A DNA stretch of 64,000 nt from Penicillus capitatus (Eukaryota > Plantae > Chlorophyta). Positions 12,241 through 39,478 of this stretch are shown here, piece after piece; the first letter of the stretch is position 1; each line of letters opens with the position of its first letter. Under the pieces are notes generated by a model. That model saw only the letters and a list, made by a program, of their open reading frames with translations, did not search any database and was not told the origin of the DNA. The DNA lies in NCBI GenBank assembly GCA_965649825.1, contig OZ287695.1:1221081-1285080 (forward strand), in the 5' to 3' direction. A program made the translations under genes and the position numbers.

Positions 12241-14166
12241 CTAAATGTTAACACTGGCAGGAATCTCAGAAGGCAAAAGATAACGGTAAGCAAAAGAGCC
12301 ACGACTATTGTTGCGACGTTCGATGACAGTCTCGATCGCTTTAAGTTCCTGCCTAAAGGACGTCAAAGCGGGCTGCACTTTTTTCTCGAGCGTCCCACAG
12401 TATGGGAACTTGTTGGAATGGTATTCACCGAGGCGGCGATAGTACACGCTGCCGAGGAGATACACGGTGTTCAACTGTTCTACGGCGTTTGGGATGGGAG
12501 GCATCAATCCCAACCACTCCCGTTCAGTTGCCTGTTGGTCAGACGGAGGGAAGTTGCCCCACACTGCAGGGGCCATTGCAGGACAGAACGTCATGTCCTG
12601 GCCTTGTGGAAAGTTAATTGCAGCGTGCTGGGCAGACCCCACAAACATGATCATTGACAGAGTCTCTGACAGATGCTGCTTCGTCTTCGGCGCTTCGAAA
12701 TTCGTCAGATTCCCATTCGCCAGAAGATCTTGTGCCCAAGCTGCCAACTGAACATCTTTCTGCACGTCTTCATCTTTCTTGTAGTAGATTTCGACATAGT
12801 CTTCAGCCCAGTGCTGAATGGCATGCCAAATATCCAAGACATCGTCCCGATAAGGAAACATCTTGAGTTTGTTCACTCCGCGTGATGCGAGTTCTCTCTC
12901 CGGCATGTGACCCACGAAATCAAATGCCAGACGCGTGTGCGTCGCCAATTCCTGAAGCGAACGGAGGCGAGGTTCGTAATTGTTCGCAAAGCTCCCGTCG
13001 ATCGCACCGCCTGGAGCAATCAGATTGGTTGCGGCTCCGAAGTTAATGAGATGCGTTCCTTCGAAATGTGGCCTCAGCAGTCTGGACAATGGATGCTCTT
13101 CTTTCAAACAGCGCTCCGTCGCCACAGCGAAGGCTTCCATGACCAGATGTGTGTGTGCCAGATGCGCCACGAGTTCATGATGGATCATGTCGGCGGCTTG
13201 GACAGTCGTCTTCGCCATCTGCCAGCGGTAGCTGTCTGTGGTGTCAGCCATGATGATTTCGCTGTCCTTCTGATCCTGTCCCAGCTGAATGGCAACGGGC
13301 ATAATATGTTCTGTACCAGTCAATGGTTCCGCAAAGACAGCAATGGGATCTGGAACAAAGGAGCTGCCGAAGACGACGACAGGAATTGTCTTGGAAAGCT
13401 CATAGTAATCCACGACGCAGAGACGGCCTTCCTCTCCTGCTCTCTCGACACTATCTCCACTCGTCTTCAGGATGCTATTAAATTGCTGGTCTGTGATCCT
13501 ATCTCCGATACGATCGACCAATTCTGCCTTCGTCACAGATCGAATGACCATCGGATTGGGACCCGCCACTCGGAAACGGGCGAACGTCTCGTCGCTTTCG
13601 AAGGTCGCTTCCCATGCTGGAAGTGGAATCAAGCGAAAAATGTCTCTGTAATCTTGCAAGGTGTTGGGCTCTCTCTGAGCCGTTCGCGACGATGGTTGTT
13701 GCTCTTCTCTTTCTTTGGTGGCCTGTGCTTTTTTCTCTTGGAGCTCTCTGACGAAATCAATAATTTCTTCAAGCAGCTCTTCTGGATCGTCCACTTTGTC
13801 TTTCTTCTCATGGTGAAGAAGCTCGACTACGGTCTCTCCAATACACTCGATGCCGGAATGGATTGTACGATGATGGTCAATTGCTGCATGCAGACGCTTT
13901 TCAAATTCAGCCAACCTGACGGAAATGGGATGCGACTCTGGACTTTCCAGTTCTTTTTCAGTCAACATATTGTTCAGTAAGATCGTCGCCATCACTCTGG
14001 CGACCTGCAACACCCACACAGCCGTCGGCCACTGCCCCATGGTAAGCTCGTCTCCGAAGATAGGAACTCGTGCTGACAACGTATCCGCGTTACCCCATGT
14101 GGGCGACACGCTATCTTTGGCTTTGTCTTCATGACACGGCTGGTGAGCCGTGAGGATGCTGGTCAT
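12241..14166 (-). CDS. LOX: Lipoxygenase (non-heme iron, linoleate/arachidonate LOX), single exon, no PLAT domain
   Basis: 641-aa ORF with RVAGPNPM, WQMAK, the iron ligands HHELVAHLAHTH and QHAAINF, and C-terminal IPASVNI ending in Ile. Confidence 0.95.
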   Translation of the reverse strand: MTSILTAHQPCHEDKAKDSVSPTWGNADTLSARVPIFGDELTMGQWPTAVWVLQVARVMATILLNNMLTEKELESPESHPISVRLAEFEKRLHAAIDHHRTIHSGIECIGETVVELLHHEKKDKVDDPEELLEEIIDFVRELQEKKAQATKEREEQQPSSRTAQREPNTLQDYRDIFRLIPLPAWEATFESDETFARFRVAGPNPMVIRSVTKAELVDRIGDRITDQQFNSILKTSGDSVERAGEEGRLCVVDYYELSKTIPVVVFGSSFVPDPIAVFAEPLTGTEHIMPVAIQLGQDQKDSEIIMADTTDSYRWQMAKTTVQAADMIHHELVAHLAHTHLVMEAFAVATERCLKEEHPLSRLLRPHFEGTHLINFGAATNLIAPGGAIDGSFANNYEPRLRSLQELATHTRLAFDFVGHMPERELASRGVNKLKMFPYRDDVLDIWHAIQHWAEDYVEIYYKKDEDVQKDVQLAAWAQDLLANGNLTNFEAPKTKQHLSETLSMIMFVGSAQHAAINFPQGQDMTFCPAMAPAVWGNFPPSDQQATEREWLGLMPPIPNAVEQLNTVYLLGSVYYRRLGEYHSNKFPYCGTLEKKVQPALTSFRQELKAIETVIERRNNSRGSFAYRYLLPSEIPASVNI

Positions 14167-19490: not shown

Positions 19491-22400
19491 ATGCATTTCT
19501 CACTCGTCTTTCTTCTTTGTCTGTTCGCCCACGAAGCCCACTCCACAGAACAATCTGCGGCGTGCCGAAAATGGCACTCTGCGCATGCAGAAGACATCTA
19601 TCGCCTGCCTCGAAAAGGCACCCGCCACTTTTGTTGCCGGCGACTGTTTCCACATGCTGCAGAATTGAACGCGACAGGCATGAACGAGACAGAAGACAGG
19701 CGTAGACTGATGTTTGAAAATGCAACATCGTCTTTCTCCTTCTACCGAACCGTACGCATCGCGGCTCTCTTCATCTGTACGGAAGTCGCTGACTTGTACT
19801 GCGAACAGGGGAGAGTGGAGAGACGTTCTTTGCTTCAGTCGACGGACTCGAACACTGCGACAAAGACAGGTTCGTCTCGTCTTTCTGACGGGTCCGAGGG
19901 ACACCATTGCGACGGTACAGGAGAGGGATGTTCGCTGAGGCGAGGACAGGTCGACCGTTTCGTCGACGATGAGACTGGAGTGTGGCTGGTGACCGACGCC
20001 GTCCTCGACGAGATCAATAGCGACATCCAAAGAATAATCGACTGTACGAATGCAGGGGACACGCTCCTCTTCGACGTTACGAAGACGATCAAGCCGTCAG
20101 CACCCATCATCGTCTCCCGACCGCTGACGTTGAGCGCGTACGTGGAGAACCCGAAGCTCGAGGGCGGTGCGTTTCCTCGAGCGGCCGATCGGACAGCGTT
20201 CACCTGTCCGCGGGAGAATGAAGGTCTTCTCTCTATCAGGTGGTCTGCCCCCGACTCGTCTCCTGTTCATTCTGGACCTGTCGCGCAGGACCGGCAACGT
20301 GACTCTGGCGAATATCGACGTCGACGGATGCTCATTCGACAACTCCAACGGGACTCGCGCCATCGTCGACGTCGAGTGTGGTCACGAAGATGCGAAAGGC
20401 GCTGTTCGATTCGATCACTTGGGGTTCAGCCACAACAGACTCCTCGGATCCGTCGCCATAAGAGCGAATTCCGGGCACTGCTCTGTCTTGAGGATCAGAA
20501 GTTTCTCTTTCCGCCACAACACCTGCGGTGGGCTGTGCGGTGCACTCTTGTCCGAAGATAACTCGCTCCACGGACTCACTGTCGTGAAGAACCAAGCGGC
20601 AAAACAATCGGCACATAACCCTGTCATGTTTCGAATGCCTCCTGGATCCAGAACTCATGCAAGCCAGATTCATGCAGCGAAGAATCCTTTTTCGCTTTTT
20701 GAAGTCGTCGAAGGACGTTTGAACTTATCAGATTCGACATTTTCGGGAGCTTCTGGCCGCGAAGCAGGAGACAATGCCGATTCCTGCATGAAACTCACAG
20801 ATGCAAACGTGTCTATTAAAGAATGCGATTTTCAAAGGAATGGAGGCGATGATGGTGCGGCAATCAAAGCCACTGGATCGAGAATCATTGTTGCAAAGAG
20901 CACATTCGAAAAGAACATTGCGCGCAAGAGAGGGATTCTTTCTGTCAGGGATGGAGGATCTCTCGAAATCCACTCATGCCACTTCATATCAAATCGAGCA
21001 GGAGAATCTGGGGGTGCCATTGATGCTAGGAAGACACACATCGTTATCACGAAATCGACCTTCAGGAACAACGAAGCTGGTTTGGTGGCCAGTGCTCGAC
21101 GTCCTTCTAGTGGACAACACCTCATCGAGAGAGATGCAAGGGAAGAGACTTCTCCGTCCTCGTCATATGGAGGGGCTGCGTATTTCGATCGTGTGACAGG
21201 AGAGATCGAAGACTGCGAGTTTCAATCAAACAAGGCTCGCAATGATGGCGGTGGCATTTACGTCGAAGAATCGACGATGGACATTGTCGGAGGAAATGTT
21301 GATAATAACCGTGCTTCCAACGGTGGTGGCGTTTATGTACGACGCTCAAGAGTTGTCATAAGCGAAGGAGACTTTAAGGGAAACAATGCGTCTGAAGAAG
21401 GTGGAGGCATCAAGGTATATGAAGGCTCCGATGTTACTATAAAGCAAACGTCTTTCAAAGCAAACAGAGCCGGAGATGAAGGAGGAGGCATCATAGCAGG
21501 CAAGTCGTATGTTCGTGTGATGGGTGCCACCTTTGAAGGAAACATTGCCAAAGACGAAGGCGGTCGAATCTCTGCAGACTTCGGCACCGAACTTCACGTG
21601 CACCAATCGTTGTTCAAAAAGAATCACGCAGGAGATGGTGGAGCCGTTGAGCATGGCGAGAAAAGCGCAGGATACTTCAGCAGTGTGACTTTTGAAGAGA
21701 ACACCGCGTTAGGCTACGGGGGCTCGGTGGCTGCAGAGTACGCAAAACTGAGCTTTATCGATTCGGCGTTCAGGAATGGAGCAGCTGGTTTGGGAGGCAG
21801 CTTCATCTCTCTGTCCGAAAACTGCGATGTACACATCGAGAGCACATCCATGACCCGCGGCAGTGCTAAAAGAGGAGGGGCAATTGATGTCCTCACTTCC
21901 GTACTGAAAGCAAGGGGTCTGGATGTCTCAAATTGTTCAGCAGAGACACATGGCGGTGCACTGATGTCGACATACTCGGCAATCGTATGTGTCGACTGCT
22001 CCTTGCAGAAGAACTCGGCGAGAGAGACTGGTGGTGGCATTTCATTCGAAGCGGGCGAGAAGGACAAGAATCTGGTGCTCCAACTGGAAGGGACTTCAGT
22101 CTCGCGCAACACGGCCAAGGTCGGAGGTGAGTTCTCTCTTCAATGGCAGCAAGTCGGCGATCGATGTATCATCTCCCTCTAGGCGGTCTGCGTTTCGTGA
22201 ATCCCTTCGTTTCCACAGAGTGTCTGGAGTACGGCGAGGGTTGCATCTTCGCAGCGATCATTAACACTCGATTCGAAGATAACAACGCAACTTCGGCTGG
22301 AGGGGCAATTTTTGCTCACTATCTCGAAGCCATCCGTTTCCGTTGCTCGGCAATGCAGAAAGACTCGAATCTGGAGTTTTTCGATGAAGAAGACATCCAG

Positions 22401-25400
22401 TCTTTGGATAATCTGACATCTCAAGAACAGTTCTGCGATACATGGGAGAAGAACGAAGCTGCTGAGTATGGTCCTGTTATCGGATCATATCCTACGAAAG
22501 TGAACTTTACGATCGATCACGCGAAGCACGTAGAGATGGACAGTGAACATGAGTACATCATCAAGAGATATCGCGCCGGCGAAGACCTTCCAGAATAATA
22601 ATAATAATAAATTTGGTGCTTCTTACATCCCCTTTTCAAGTTAAACATCAGAGGAGAGGGCTTAATCAATGTTCAGACAAAGCAGAGCGAACCCAAATCA
22701 GAAGCATGCATGAAATGAGATGTGGATCAGGGAACTCCTTGAGGGACCCTGGGAGACCGTGTAAATGAGCGGATTGGTAGAACCATGTAGTCCAGCGTCG
22801 CGAACGCCGACTTGGGGTCCTTCAGTATCTCGAAGAGAGTCTTCGACACGAAGACTTTCAGGTTTCTGCTCGGTGTCCATTCGGGAAGGGGCTGTCCTGA
22901 GGCATCGCGCTTCCGGCGATTCAAACGGTGTGGGGCGGCAAAGTGCGATTCTTCGAGTTCAGTTGCCGGTATCTTCCAGCGGGTTGTGTTCTGTTCTGCA
23001 ATGGCGGTGATGGCTGCTTCTGGATCAATGTCTGTGTCGACGTTGCTGATGACGACGGGGACTTTGTCTTTTGTGGGCGAGAGGTACGGGTTGTTCACTG
23101 CGAACGTACCGATCTCTGGCAGCTCGAGATCCCAGGCGTCTCCTGAACATTCCAAGCAGCGATCCAATGACTTCTCGAAGGACTCACGCCACTCGGCACG
23201 GATTTGCACGTAGAAACGGCCTCCGTGATCGGTGCGGATGTCTTCAACGTGTTCCTTCAGGTTCTTGATTTGGAGCTTTCGCTCCAGACTGATTCCGAGC
23301 TGGCGGAAGGACGGTCGCTCTCCCTTCAGCTTAACTGGGCAGAACTGAAAGCTGCGCTCATCACAGCGGATCTGGGCTTTGAGCTCTTGGGTTTTCTTCC
23401 GAAGCTCTCTGGTCTGGGCGTTTCGTTGCTTCTGTGCAGGAGTCTGTGTGGTCGGGGCCTTTCGTGCGGCGTCCCGGTACGATCTGGGAGCAGCACTGCC
23501 AGGATCTGTCGCTGCCGGGTCCTTTGCCGTGGGGGCGGGGGACGTGGGGTGAGCGGCGGGCGATGTCCAATCCGTGATGCTGTGGTAGAACAGCATGCAG
23601 TTCTGGACCTCCTGTAACCTGGAGATGGCCTGGATAGTCGGCTTCTCAAGGGCTTCGAGCTCGAGCGTCTCTATGATGTACTCGAAATGTCCGACGGAGG
23701 CGCGGATGTCATCTGAGCATGCTCGGAGGAGTTGGCTCGGCGGAACGGAGTGGCGGGTGCGGCAGAGAGCAGACGTGTGCGATTCTCCCGATCGTGGCAG
23801 TTCTGGGGCTTCGGGCGCCAGAAGGAGCTGGTTGCGCATGTTCTCGAGTCTGTTCACTAACGTCAGCTGGGCTGTGTCTTTAGCTTCGTGAGCTGCCAGG
23901 TAGTCCCGGATCTTCGAGATGAGCGTGGCGGGTTCCACGGTCGCAGCGATGTGCGTGGGGCAGGCCAGGAGGGCGGTGTTCACGAGGATTAGCTCCTTCT
24001 TGCTCATCGCCTCGAGCACCTCGGGGGTCCGGCGCAGATCGCGACGGTACCGGACCGTGTGGGCCGCTTGAGCCACCGCCGTGCGCACTGGGTCGGGGGC
24101 GGTGTCAGGACCTACGGACGTCGAACCGGAGGGCAGCATCGTACGTAAAGCGCGCGTTCGGGCACCGTCGTTCGGCAAGGGTTTTTAACGAAGCAGAACG
24201 AAAGTGTCGTACAGAGAATATATGAAGACCTTCCAGAAATGACTCTGCAGTTCATCGACGGTCTCGACCAGGTCACTTCTGTTGATTATTCCCCTAATAC
24301 CACAGCAATGGCACCACATGTCGAGTTCACCTTGGCCAATACCTCACCGCAAGTGCATGAACACAATATTACTTTCTCAAACATGGTTGGAACTGGAACC
24401 CCGGGCACTTACGAGTTAATGATCGTGTTCGAAAGTGAAGTCATCGAGAATTTAACAGTCGTTATCGAGGTACGGGAATGCATCATTGGAGAAGTGATCG
24501 ATCCTGGCACGGAGATGTGCAAAAACTGCAGCTACACAGGGTACAGTTTCAATCCCGAAGAAGACAGATGTCGGCCGTGTCCTGCAAACGGCATCTGCGA
24601 AACGAGGGTGATCGTGCCAGATGAAGGATACTGGCAGAGCAACCCATGCTCTACACACATCAAAAAATGTCTGGCGGCGCACGCCTGCACGTCTGAGAAT
24701 CGTTCTGGCGCACTGCATAACAAAACGGATGACATGGAGAGTTGTGACATGAGCCATAACGATGTACTGGAGTACAGACGAATGCAATGTGCCGAGGCAA
24801 GGCATCCCGTCCACAGACGTTGAGATAATAAGTCATTTCTTCTGTTCCCAGGGACATTCTGGTCCATTGTGTGGATCCTGCGACACTGGATATGGAAGTC
24901 TTTTCTCTTCGAGATGCAAGAAGTGTCCAGTTGACTTTGTCAGCATCTTTATGATAGGCATCTCCGTTGTGATTGTCTCTGGCTTGACAGCCATCACGAT
25001 ACAAGGGACATTGAGCACTGTTAACCACAGACGGGCAGTGCTTTCTGGTCGTGGAAGACGTTCTTTGTCCAACATCTCTACCCATTCAGCACCAGATAGC
25101 GCGGAAGACATAGAAACGCAAGGCGGTCTTCAAAGAGAACAAAATAAAACGCCATCTGAGCAGATGGATGGAGTGCCTACCAGTGAAAGAATGCTCGCTA
25201 AGTGGAAGGGCATTGAGATGCTCAAGGTATGAAACAATGAAGTCTGCTGTCTCTTCATTTCTGGCAATGGCAGATCCTGTTGAACTACATCCAGATCACT
25301 GTTTTGATCTTTTCGGTGAACGTCGGATGGGCGTTCTCTATTCGTGTCATGGCACACGTGGGAGGTGAGCCATCCCGGTGGCAATGTCATCTGAAGACTG

Positions 25401-27197: not shown

Positions 27198-29050
27198 ATG
27201 TTGCGATCGCTTCATGGTTCGACGCTGCGTTCCTTCGCTTCGACCAAAAGTCCACGAAGCATTGCTTTACTTCGACGTATTTCCCGAATCTCTTGTTCAC
27301 GACGTCCAACGCGCCGCTCTCCTAAATCTGCGATCCGCGCCGTGGCGTCGAAGGAAGCTCTCGACGTCGTCTCAAAGAAAAGCGTCGGCGAAGTACTTGA
27401 CGAGAGCTACGACAAAATCTTCACAGAAAACGAACACGTCCGTCGAGTAGGCATCGTCTTACATCCCACCTCGCTACCAGGTCTGTCTTCTTTGACAAGA
27501 CAGCTTCTTTTAGCTTCTTTAGGTCCTTATGGATGTGGAGAAGTCGGTCGCGAGGCTCTTCGATTTATCGATTGGCTCGAGAGTTGTGCCTGCCAATGTT
27601 GGCAGGTCTTGCCACTAGGACCGCCCGATCAGATGTTCTACTCTCCCTACACAGCACTCGATACCAACTGCGGCAATCCTTTACTGATTTCGATCGATTC
27701 GCTGATCGAAGAAGGACTTCTGCAACAGCACGAAGCGCCAGAACATATTCCGATGGGTCATGCCAATTTCAAACTGGCAGCAGAACGCAAAGAGCCACTA
27801 CTGAAGCTGGCAGCGGGTCGATTGCTGGACGAACAGAGATTTCATTACCTGAGAGACGAAATGTGGAAATTCCGTTCCGAGAATGTATGGATCGAAGATT
27901 CGGCATTGTTCGAAGTATTGAGATCGACGCCAGAACTGATGTCAAAGGTGTGGTGGCAATGGCCCGAACCCATTCGTTTCCGTACACCCGAAGCCATGCA
28001 AGGAAGCAGAGAGCAACACCAACGTGCCATTGACGAATTCGTGGCCATTCAGTTTCTGTTCAACCGTCAGTGGTCAGCTGTCAAACAATACGCCAATGAC
28101 AAGGGTATCAAGATCATTGGTGATATGCCCATCTATGTTGGCGGCCACAGTGCCGATGTATGGGCCAATCAGAGACTCTTTGAATTGTCAGACTCTGGCG
28201 CACCTGCTTTCGTCAGTGGTGTGCCTCCAGATGCCTTTAGCAAAACAGGACAGCTGTGGGGAACACCTCTTTACCACTGGGCAGTGCACAGAGAGTCAAA
28301 CTATGAATGGTGGGCGCAGAGACTGGGACGTGCTTTTCAGTTGTTTGATGAGACCCGTATCGATCACTTCAGAGGTTTTGCAGGATACTATTCTGTCGAG
28401 GCCCACAGAGAGACAGCCATGGTGGGTCAGTGGAAGAAAGGACCTGGTAGAGAGCTCTTTGATGCACTGCGTCAACAACTGGGGCCAATTATTGATCACG
28501 GCATCATTGCTGAGGATCTCGGCGTCATCACACCTGATGTCTATCAACTGAGAGAAGAGATCGAGGCGCCAGGAATGGTGGTACTTCAATTTGCTTTTGG
28601 AAGTAATTCCAGCAACATTCATCTCCCACATCTACACAACAAAAACAGCGTTGTCTATCCTGGTACGCTTCAGTGGCCATTCTATCAGATTCGGATAGCG
28701 GATGTACAGGGACGCATGACAATCCGACGGCCGTTGGATGGTTTCAGGACAACAGTCAACCGAAAGAACGAGAATATATGATGGAGTACATTGGATGCGA
28801 TGAAAAAGATGCAGCGTGGTCTTTGATAAGAGAATGCATGAAATCTGTTGCTCAATCCTGCATCATCTGCTTGCAGGACATCATGCGCCTGGACAACGAT
28901 CATCGCATGAATTTTCCAGGCCGAGCCGAAGACAATTGGACATGGCGTGTGAGGGACAACGGCGTCTGGGATTCGCTGAAACAGGAAGCAAAAGATTTGA
29001 GACGACTGGCAAAGAATTACAATCGTTTGCCGAAGGGATTGTCTAAGTAA
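27198..29050 (+). CDS. DPE1: 4-alpha-glucanotransferase / disproportionating enzyme 1 (GH77), plastid-targeted
   Basis: Motifs GIVLHPTSLPG, WQVLPLGP, IIGDMPIYV..HSADVW, PPDAFSKTGQLWG, RIDHFRGF, IAEDLG and (Y)PGTHDN, with an Ser/Arg-rich transit peptide and two short introns. Confidence 0.95.
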
Positions 29051-39398: not shown

Positions 39399-39478
39399 TG
39401 ACGCCCTATAGTGTCGTACATTTTGTGGCGCGACTTTTGTTTCTGTAGCGAAGTCCGAACGGGATCGCCGCACACACC

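Follow-up and report, generated by a model that had tools for sequence, protein, structure and literature searches.

The ORF1-only insert and the gene it interrupts

The 64,000-nt stretch of Penicillus capitatus contig OZ287695.1 analysed here (positions 1,221,081–1,285,080; assembly GCA_965649825.1; hereafter the window) carries on its minus strand a 1628-bp element, at 22596–24223, whose single open reading frame (ORF) is related to ORF1 of long interspersed nuclear elements (LINEs). The element lies between two perfect 15-nt direct copies of GAAGACCTTCCAGAA, one at 22581–22595 beside its 3′ tail and the other at 24224–24238 beside its 5′ end, and this sequence occurs only these two times in the whole 64 kb, even allowing one mismatch (chance expectation 0.02). 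Together with a (TTA)5 tail, this perfect 15-bp target-site duplication (TSD) bears out the original prediction, an earlier reading of the same DNA, in which 22581–24238 carried the signature of target-primed reverse transcription (TPRT). The GC content of the insert is 57%, versus 49% for the window.

In its own orientation, the element begins with an 84-nt leader (24140–24223), in which 11 copy-specific nt (24213–24223) precede a conserved start, GTACGACAC, at 24204–24212. The intact ORF follows at 22727–24139 and encodes 470 aa plus stop counted from ATG, or 483 aa counted from an upstream TTG; its product is a homologue of the LINE ORF1 protein (ORF1p) that has no CCHC knuckles. An N-terminal helical domain (23573–24091) is the more variable part of this protein, and the conserved C-terminal half holds two consecutive alpha/beta modules (22820–23353) that, in structure models, resemble the RNA recognition motif (RRM). 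The 3′ untranslated region (UTR) spans 131 nt (22596–22726), and its last ~55–60 nt, the part that is conserved and shared with LINEs, comprise a hairpin with a 6-bp stem, TCCTCT/AGGGGA, and a 16-nt loop (22628–22655), a TGTAA(R)A motif directly 3′ of it (22621–22627; TGTAA itself at 22623–22627), 12 nt that separate TGTAA from the tail, and the (TTA)5 tail (22596–22610).

That the element is ORF1-only, with neither reverse transcriptase (RT) nor endonuclease (EN), was confirmed: it holds one ORF, and neither tblastn with LINE ORF2 nor Pfam analysis of the large ORFs turned up anything resembling ORF2 across the window. Apart from the TSD, the element showed neither direct nor inverted terminal repeats, self-BLAST of the window revealed no second copy, a scan of the window for the 3′ motif matched the element itself and nothing else, and Rfam and tRNA scans of the element gave no match.

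When the flanks are joined through one copy of the TSD, they read as a continuous host frame of 345 codons (...RYRAGEDLPEMTLQF...), and the insert therefore interrupts the ORF of a gene, as had been proposed from the outset. The part of this frame upstream of the insertion (22143–22595, plus strand) now takes its stop from the tail of the element (ORF 22143–22598), and the downstream part (24239–24823, plus strand) is in frame with it once the insert is removed. Just upstream of the interrupted frame, the adjoining ORF at 20167–22182 contains Chlam_PMP/NosD repeats (Pfam). The element was inserted, in antisense orientation, into an exon of a gene for a membrane protein with Chlam_PMP repeats, whose frame it truncates. 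ORFs 20167–22182 and 22143–22598 overlap at 22143–22182 in different frames, with a short intron or a frameshift between them.

A dispersed family of mosaic copies

A word-based protein search with the window ORF identified 21 relatives, 47–89% identical, of which ~13 are full-length (~470 aa) and all of which come from ENA metagenome assemblies. Six loci were fetched, L001–L003 and L006 from ERZ25074695, which also holds the window locus, and L004 and L005 from ERZ26696514, so that genomic context was inspected for seven of about 20 family ORFs. The six further copies, 1.62–1.79 kb long, follow the same plan as the one in the window: copy-specific nt, GTACGACAC, ORF, 3′ UTR, conserved module and simple-repeat tail, the latter being (TTA)2–6 or A-rich. 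All seven have the same stop position, and each bears a different perfect TSD of 14–15 nt. No ORF2-like sequence was detected by tblastn with LINE ORF2 within 6–10 kb of any of L001–L006. The copies are single and dispersed at unrelated sites, namely a gene exon, a gypsy element and intergenic DNA; in L002 (5160–11315) the ORF1-only element is inserted in a Ty3/gypsy element, with the pol part on one side and the gag-protease part on the other. Several copies with different TSDs, which the original prediction had named as the way to recognize a family, were thus found in two assemblies.

Every copy carries 5–12 copy-specific, mostly T-rich nt between the TSD and GTACGACAC, which could be untemplated additions at the 5′ junction or reflect variable transcription starts. 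The 9-mer GTACGACAC also occurs at window positions 39411–39419 (minus strand) and in L005 at ~13916–13924 (minus strand), with ~0.5 occurrences expected per 64 kb; these additional sites are probably coincidental, the sequence that follows them being unlike the element.

At the DNA level, copies from the same genome differ by 10–20%, and copies from different genomes by more. Because all the TSDs are perfect, this divergence is one between source lineages and not decay after insertion. Protein identity across the two genomes ranges from 42 to 89%, and members with no more than 42–60% identity, as well as those of the second assembly, have kept the ORF1-only architecture and the position of the stop.

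Sliding-window identities revealed that L002 is a mosaic, 92–96% identical to L001 in its 5′ half and 91–94% identical to L003 in its 3′ half, and that the element in the window reaches 90% identity to L006 solely around element nt 1200–1350. Such mosaic copies point to recombination or template switching among co-existing lineages. In L006 an A-type leader and ORF are joined to a B-type 3′ end (the types are described below), and L004 and L005 have near-identical ORFs with different 3′ ends; 3′ modules have therefore been exchanged between lineages.

A knuckle-less ORF1p with predicted tandem RRM-like modules

Pairwise ratios of nonsynonymous to synonymous substitution rates (dN/dS) between copies, a comparison that had been suggested with the original prediction, are ~0.2 overall, 0.1–0.15 in the C-terminal (RRM) half and 0.3–0.7 in the N-terminal half, and dS between lineages ranges from 0.3 to >1. 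This pattern of substitution indicates purifying selection on the ORF. Even those members of the second assembly that are 42% identical retain the C-terminal motif (...LDYMVLPIR.[FY]...) and the position of the stop.

Pfam analysis of the window ORF returned nothing but sub-threshold noise, with no match to Transposase_22, and a sequence profile search of the PDB gave nothing meaningful. A profile search of 1.8 billion representatives recovered 71 relatives, and among the longer of these 11 bear knuckles. The nine knuckle-bearing relatives that were aligned, which also have the N-terminal helical domain, run into two CCHC knuckles ~6 residues before the stop of the window ORF, and the window ORF and the whole family terminate within ~6–8 residues of the column where these relatives begin C-x2-C-x3-4-H-x4-C. 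The observation that the ORF stops where knuckles usually begin was therefore well founded. Knuckles are missing too from a distant member, P0025, and from ORF1 of the near-intact LINE in L010, which ends in ...FDYQIKEVRRFEDSPGRHSMASSQ; because the whole family and these two proteins are knuckle-less, the loss is not a truncation peculiar to the copy in the window. In another relative (P0056/P0090), the homologous region continues into a LINE apurinic/apyrimidinic endonuclease (APE; Pfam Exo_endo_phos_2), with RVT_1 next in the genome. A scan of JGI data for the contig encoding the knuckle-bearing relative P0032 yielded no match.

AlphaFold (AF2) models contain a helical N-terminal domain, a disordered linker, a long helix and two alpha/beta modules; the model of the C-terminal half is of moderate quality, with a predicted local distance difference test (pLDDT) score of 70. 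The best Foldseek matches to this half were almost solely tandem-RRM proteins that aligned over both modules, with probabilities of 0.9–0.99 (UP1, CPEB4, nucleolin RBD12, HuR, Hrp1 2cjk and Prp24 2ghp); L1 ORF1p was also listed, as a weak fold match. The C-terminal half is thus predicted to adopt a tandem RRM-like fold. Taken with its homology to ORF1s of RRM-RRM-CCHC organization, this modelled fold makes the protein a knuckle-less relative of type-I ORF1p.

Another frame of the 3′ segment had been read as the possible end of a lost ORF2. This +1 frame (LKEFPDPHLIS...) was examined as an ORF2 relic and rejected: sister copies have non-triplet indels, including a 5-nt insertion, and early stops in it, the upstream part of the 3′ UTR is poorly conserved, and the C-termini of LINE ORF2 (...EFVE.IS..W...GRRW...) are unrelated to it. 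In P0013, a family member from a contig of 1,837,688 bp, a frameshift close to the C-terminus makes the gene call continue into this same +1 frame (...PPEEFPDPHFITFMLLIWV...).

A 3′ module shared with LINEs

The family 3′ end is built on a module that we also found in LINEs encoding EN and RT, with a shared length of ~55 nt: a 6-bp stem, a loop starting with GAT and ending in AAA(A), TGTAA(R)A, ~10–15 nt and then the tail. Type A ends, with a (TTA)n tail, occur in the window and in L001–L003 and L005; type B ends, with an A-rich tail, in the ORF1-only copies L004 and L006 and in the LINE of L007/L008; and type C ends in the LINEs of L009 and L010. The type B ORF1-only copies L004 and L006 share the ~55 nt with the L007/L008 LINE, and the type A end of the window element is homologous, with the same hairpin and TGTAA(R)A. 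The motif is invariant in nine of nine element and LINE 3′ ends. Pairing of the stem holds in 100% of cells across these nine sequences, and four of the six pairs have changed on both sides, in a compensatory manner, among types A, B and C; the covariation score was reached by none of 500 shuffles, and it collapsed in controls slid along the sequence. Stem-loops with compensatory changes are typical of the 3′ ends of LINEs and short interspersed nuclear elements (SINEs) of the stringent type, and the I element, which ends in TAA repeats, provides a precedent for the type of tail (PMC3747384).

TGTAA occurs 63 times in the window against ~129 expected, a roughly two-fold depletion, and it is found once, 245–480 nt downstream, at five of nine ORF ends tested (12241, 28781, 26446, 43953 and 57504), where AATAAA is mostly missing. 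UGUAA is the poly(A) signal in green algae such as Chlamydomonas and Ostreococcus (PMC11529991, PMC1868727), and the pattern at the ORF ends of the window is consistent with a signal of this kind. TGTAA(R)A in the element may be a host-type poly(A) signal, part of a site recognized by RT, or both.

Candidate partner LINEs

Residues 233–477 of the window protein matched, in tblastn, an ORF1 directly upstream of Exo_endo_phos_2 and RVT_1 in L007–L010 (E from 1e−17 to 1e−20), and LINEs with an ORF1 homologue, APE and RT are present in both assemblies (L007/L008, L009, L010 and L011). Their ORF1s are ~28% identical to these residues, lack the N-terminal domain and, like the window ORF, have no CCHC knuckles. 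L010 (1975–10600) is a nest of LINEs with one near-intact copy on the minus strand (ORF1 of 290 aa; ORF2 of 676 + 634 aa with one in-frame stop), which abuts a 5′-truncated plus-strand copy and another ORF1 fragment. L007 (10001–14775) and L008 (8001–12780), from contigs of 32x and 20x coverage, carry one and the same degraded LINE insertion, next to CPSF_A and ParA-like genes in both, which shows that allelic haplotigs are present in the assembly. In this L007/L008 copy, a single frame encodes the ORF1 homologue and the endonuclease. In L009 (3200–12550), the LINE is inserted in the pol/integrase region of a Ty3/gypsy element. Among these LINEs there was no intact autonomous partner with both ends in common, which the original prediction had suggested looking for: they share the 3′ module and do not share the 5′ end.

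A second version of the locus and its surroundings

L012 (ENA contig ctg340449_36x_l) is a second version of the window locus, ~99.7% identical, and has the identical insertion, with both junctions, the TSD and the (TTA)5 tail in agreement with the window. The two versions differ by no substitution in 1310 bp of the element, and by 13 in 5869 bp and 20 in 5444 bp of the flanks. Between L012:5380–6080 and window 23850–24780, at the element 5′ end and the adjacent host exon, the differences are deletions only (1–118 bp, no substitutions), and this cluster looks like a local assembly or consensus error in L012, possibly at a heterozygous bubble. P0002, an odd 399-aa gene call produced by that deletion cluster, had been considered as a second, identical, 5′-truncated copy; it was rejected as such, because it represents the ENA version of the window locus, in which the 5′ region is damaged.

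A look-up for exact matches to the protein that the joined flanks would encode gave no record of an empty site, and L012 is likewise filled. The closest sister copy of the window element is 90% identical to it, and its source copy was not among the copies examined. With a perfect TSD, an intact element ORF and both halves of the host frame intact, a recent insertion is plausible.

Elsewhere in the window are genes for FACT/SPT16, for a lipoxygenase and for a plastidial DPE1 of plant type (GH77, 27198–28781), which matches potato and Arabidopsis DPE1 with E from ~1e−131, far better than bacterial amylomaltases. Together with the TGTAA pattern, this gene content points to a host that is probably a green alga, in line with the stated source of the DNA.

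Discussion

The insert in the window is very probably a full-length, intact copy of an established non-autonomous, ORF1-only family of retrotransposons without long terminal repeats (non-LTR), ~1.6–1.8 kb in size and presumably mobilized by the enzyme of a related LINE. The proposal that such a family supplies its own knuckle-less ORF1p has gained from seven copies of the same structure with different TSDs and from the selection apparent in their ORFs. Occurring in two genomes, as several lineages that recombine and swap 3′ modules, the family is old. Because of this age, and because the ORF is maintained by purifying selection, the single-ORF, knuckle-less state is the normal state of the family and not the product of a recent deletion.

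In the mechanism we propose, the transcript of the element would be translated into its own ORF1p, which would coat that transcript in cis. The 3′ hairpin module would then be recognized, by stringent 3′-end recognition, by the EN/RT of a related LINE lineage with the same module, a step suggested because the module is shared. This enzyme would nick the target and prime reverse transcription on the (UUA)n or A-rich tail, and a staggered second nick would generate the 14–15-bp duplication, TPRT being indicated because of the TSD. We infer that an active partner LINE exists.

Several observations weigh against this reading. All the LINE copies examined are disrupted by one or more stops or frameshifts, the least damaged being the L010 copy with its one in-frame stop, and an RT-based protein search found for ORF2 of this LINE lineage only fragments of ≤542 aa on record. 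The 3′ ends of the LINEs seen are of type B or C, with A-rich tails, and these LINEs do not have the 5′ end of the element. Regex scans of all loci fetched revealed no RT-bearing element with a type A end (16-nt loop, (TTA)n tail), and a scan of a JGI metagenome with a 29-nt motif for such an element gave 0 matches. The hairpin is short and, because thermodynamic folding shows no unusual stability, the argument for it is one from covariation, drawn from 3–4 independent lineages. Genomic context, finally, was inspected for seven of about 20 family ORFs.

This last point is also what can be said for one rival explanation, in which the copies arise by retrocopying of a spliced or subgenomic transcript that carries ORF1 alone and comes, again and again, from an unseen full-length LINE master, as with spliced L1 retrocopies: context is known for just those seven ORFs. 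However, no ORF2 lies near any inspected copy, there are several diverged lineages in two genomes, and RT searches recovered low-copy, degraded LINEs alone, whose very different ORF1s have no N-terminal domain. Moreover, the lineage-specific 3′ UTRs and the 3′-module swaps are borne by the ORF1-only copies themselves, and we find the explanation very improbable. The original prediction had instead envisaged an internally deleted element mobilized very recently, that is, a full-length LINE that lost ORF2 around the time of insertion and left a young one-off or a very young derivative. The perfect TSD and the intact ORF do allow for a young insertion. The deletion itself is contradicted by the same junction-free architecture, stop position and ~1.6–1.8-kb length in copies that are 10–58% divergent in protein and in the second assembly, by a dS between lineages of 0.3 to >1 at a dN/dS of ~0.2, and by an ORF1 only ~28% identical to that of any LINE found, with ~55 nt of 3′ sequence in common; nor is the supposed ORF2 remnant frame conserved. 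This account must be judged very unlikely.

A collapse or mis-join during assembly that deleted ORF2 is of negligible probability. The deletion-only cluster at the element 5′ junction in L012 does indicate that local assembly quality is imperfect, but the same structure recurs at seven loci in two assemblies with a clean TSD at each, and L012 matches the window at both junctions, in the TSD and in the tail. The seven copies with TSDs of their own, none of them near an ORF2, refute the three outcomes that had been foreseen as refuting a family: a single copy, a deletion after insertion and a collapsed assembly. Very unlikely, too, is a domesticated host gene family whose mRNAs are occasionally retrocopied. 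It would agree with the strong purifying selection on the ORF, and the invariant TGTAA may be a host poly(A) signal; yet all copies are intronless, with the same LINE-type hairpin and tail and the same start motif at unrelated sites, they form many diverged, recombining lineages, and none of those inspected has a host-gene-like context, with introns and no TSD.

An ORF1-only family mobilized in trans invites comparison with several known systems. HAL1 elements encode ORF1p alone, depend on LINE ORF2p and arose several times in mammals, as a passage in PMC5753468 summarizes (citing Smit 1999 and Bao & Jurka 2010). The term HAL1-like used in the original prediction is apt as an analogy, that of a non-autonomous LINE derivative with ORF1p alone and ORF2p provided in trans, but not as a family assignment. 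HAL1 is L1-derived, with a type-II ORF1 (coiled coil, RRM and C-terminal domain; Transposase_22), a poly(A) tail and relaxed recognition, whereas the window element has homologues of type-I organization (tandem RRM plus CCHC), a structured 3′ module, a (TTA)n tail and a host that is not an animal. In Drosophila, HeT-A and other telomeric Jockey-clade elements that are ORF1(Gag)-only persist for long, spawn ORF1-only lineages and rely on the ORF2 of others, and in two species only ORF2 fragments were found (bioRxiv 10.1101/2025.06.09.658640). The family described here resembles them in its presumed reliance on a foreign ORF2 and, as in those two species, in the lack of an intact partner among the LINEs found. 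It differs in being dispersed and knuckle-less, HeT-A-type elements forming telomere-specific head-to-tail arrays and having a Gag with CCHC.

In stringent SINE/LINE pairs, the sequence in common is limited to the 3′-terminal tens of nucleotides, among them a simple-repeat tail and a stem-loop that shows compensatory changes (PMC3747384). The short shared 3′ end of the window element, with its stem-loop and tail, recalls such pairs (eel UnaSINE1/UnaL2; Chlamydomonas SINEX with RandI or L1-1_CR), but SINEs are short and non-coding, usually with a pol III head, and the element is 1.6 kb long with a 470-aa ORF under selection. Type-I ORF1 is defined by one or more RRMs immediately upstream of CCHC (classes of Khazina & Weichenrieder, summarized in PMC4120745). 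The window protein is like the type-I ORF1p of the I, Jockey, R1, Tad1, L2 and plant L1 clades in its predicted tandem RRM-like modules and its homology to the ORF1s of LINEs with APE and RT, but it does not have the defining CCHC knuckle directly after the RRM. The element is thus not a member of HAL1, of the HeT-like elements or of type-I ORF1 in the strict sense. By analogy it would work like HAL1 or HeT-A, with its own ORF1p supplied and ORF2p borrowed; because it shares only the structured ~55-nt 3′ module with LINEs, its architecture is nearer to that of a protein-coding SINE.

ORF1-only LINE derivatives have been documented mainly as mammalian HAL1 and Drosophila telomeric elements, and here a dispersed, intact family of several lineages occurs outside animals. 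It combines a knuckle-less ORF1, with predicted tandem RRMs, that is clearly under purifying selection, a covarying hairpin shared with LINEs, module swapping and a gene-disrupting insertion. For annotation, the family ORFs of ~470 aa, which lack a Pfam match, should be masked as transposon genes and not taken for host genes. The family is a compact natural system for asking what ORF1p contributes in cis and how parasites of LINEs exploit stringent 3′ recognition. A bolder idea, which we put forward tentatively and regard as rather doubtful, is that of a long-lived, self-diversifying 'protein-coding SINE', an ORF1 gene that would stay mobile by recombination and by swapping type A and B modules from whichever LINE lineage is active, and that would still be competent, through a heterologous or rare RT, without a detectable intact LINE of its own terminus. 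If true, the supply of ORF1p in cis would be what enables such an element, though non-autonomous, to outcompete its autonomous LINEs in a non-animal, probably green-algal, genome and perhaps to outlive them.

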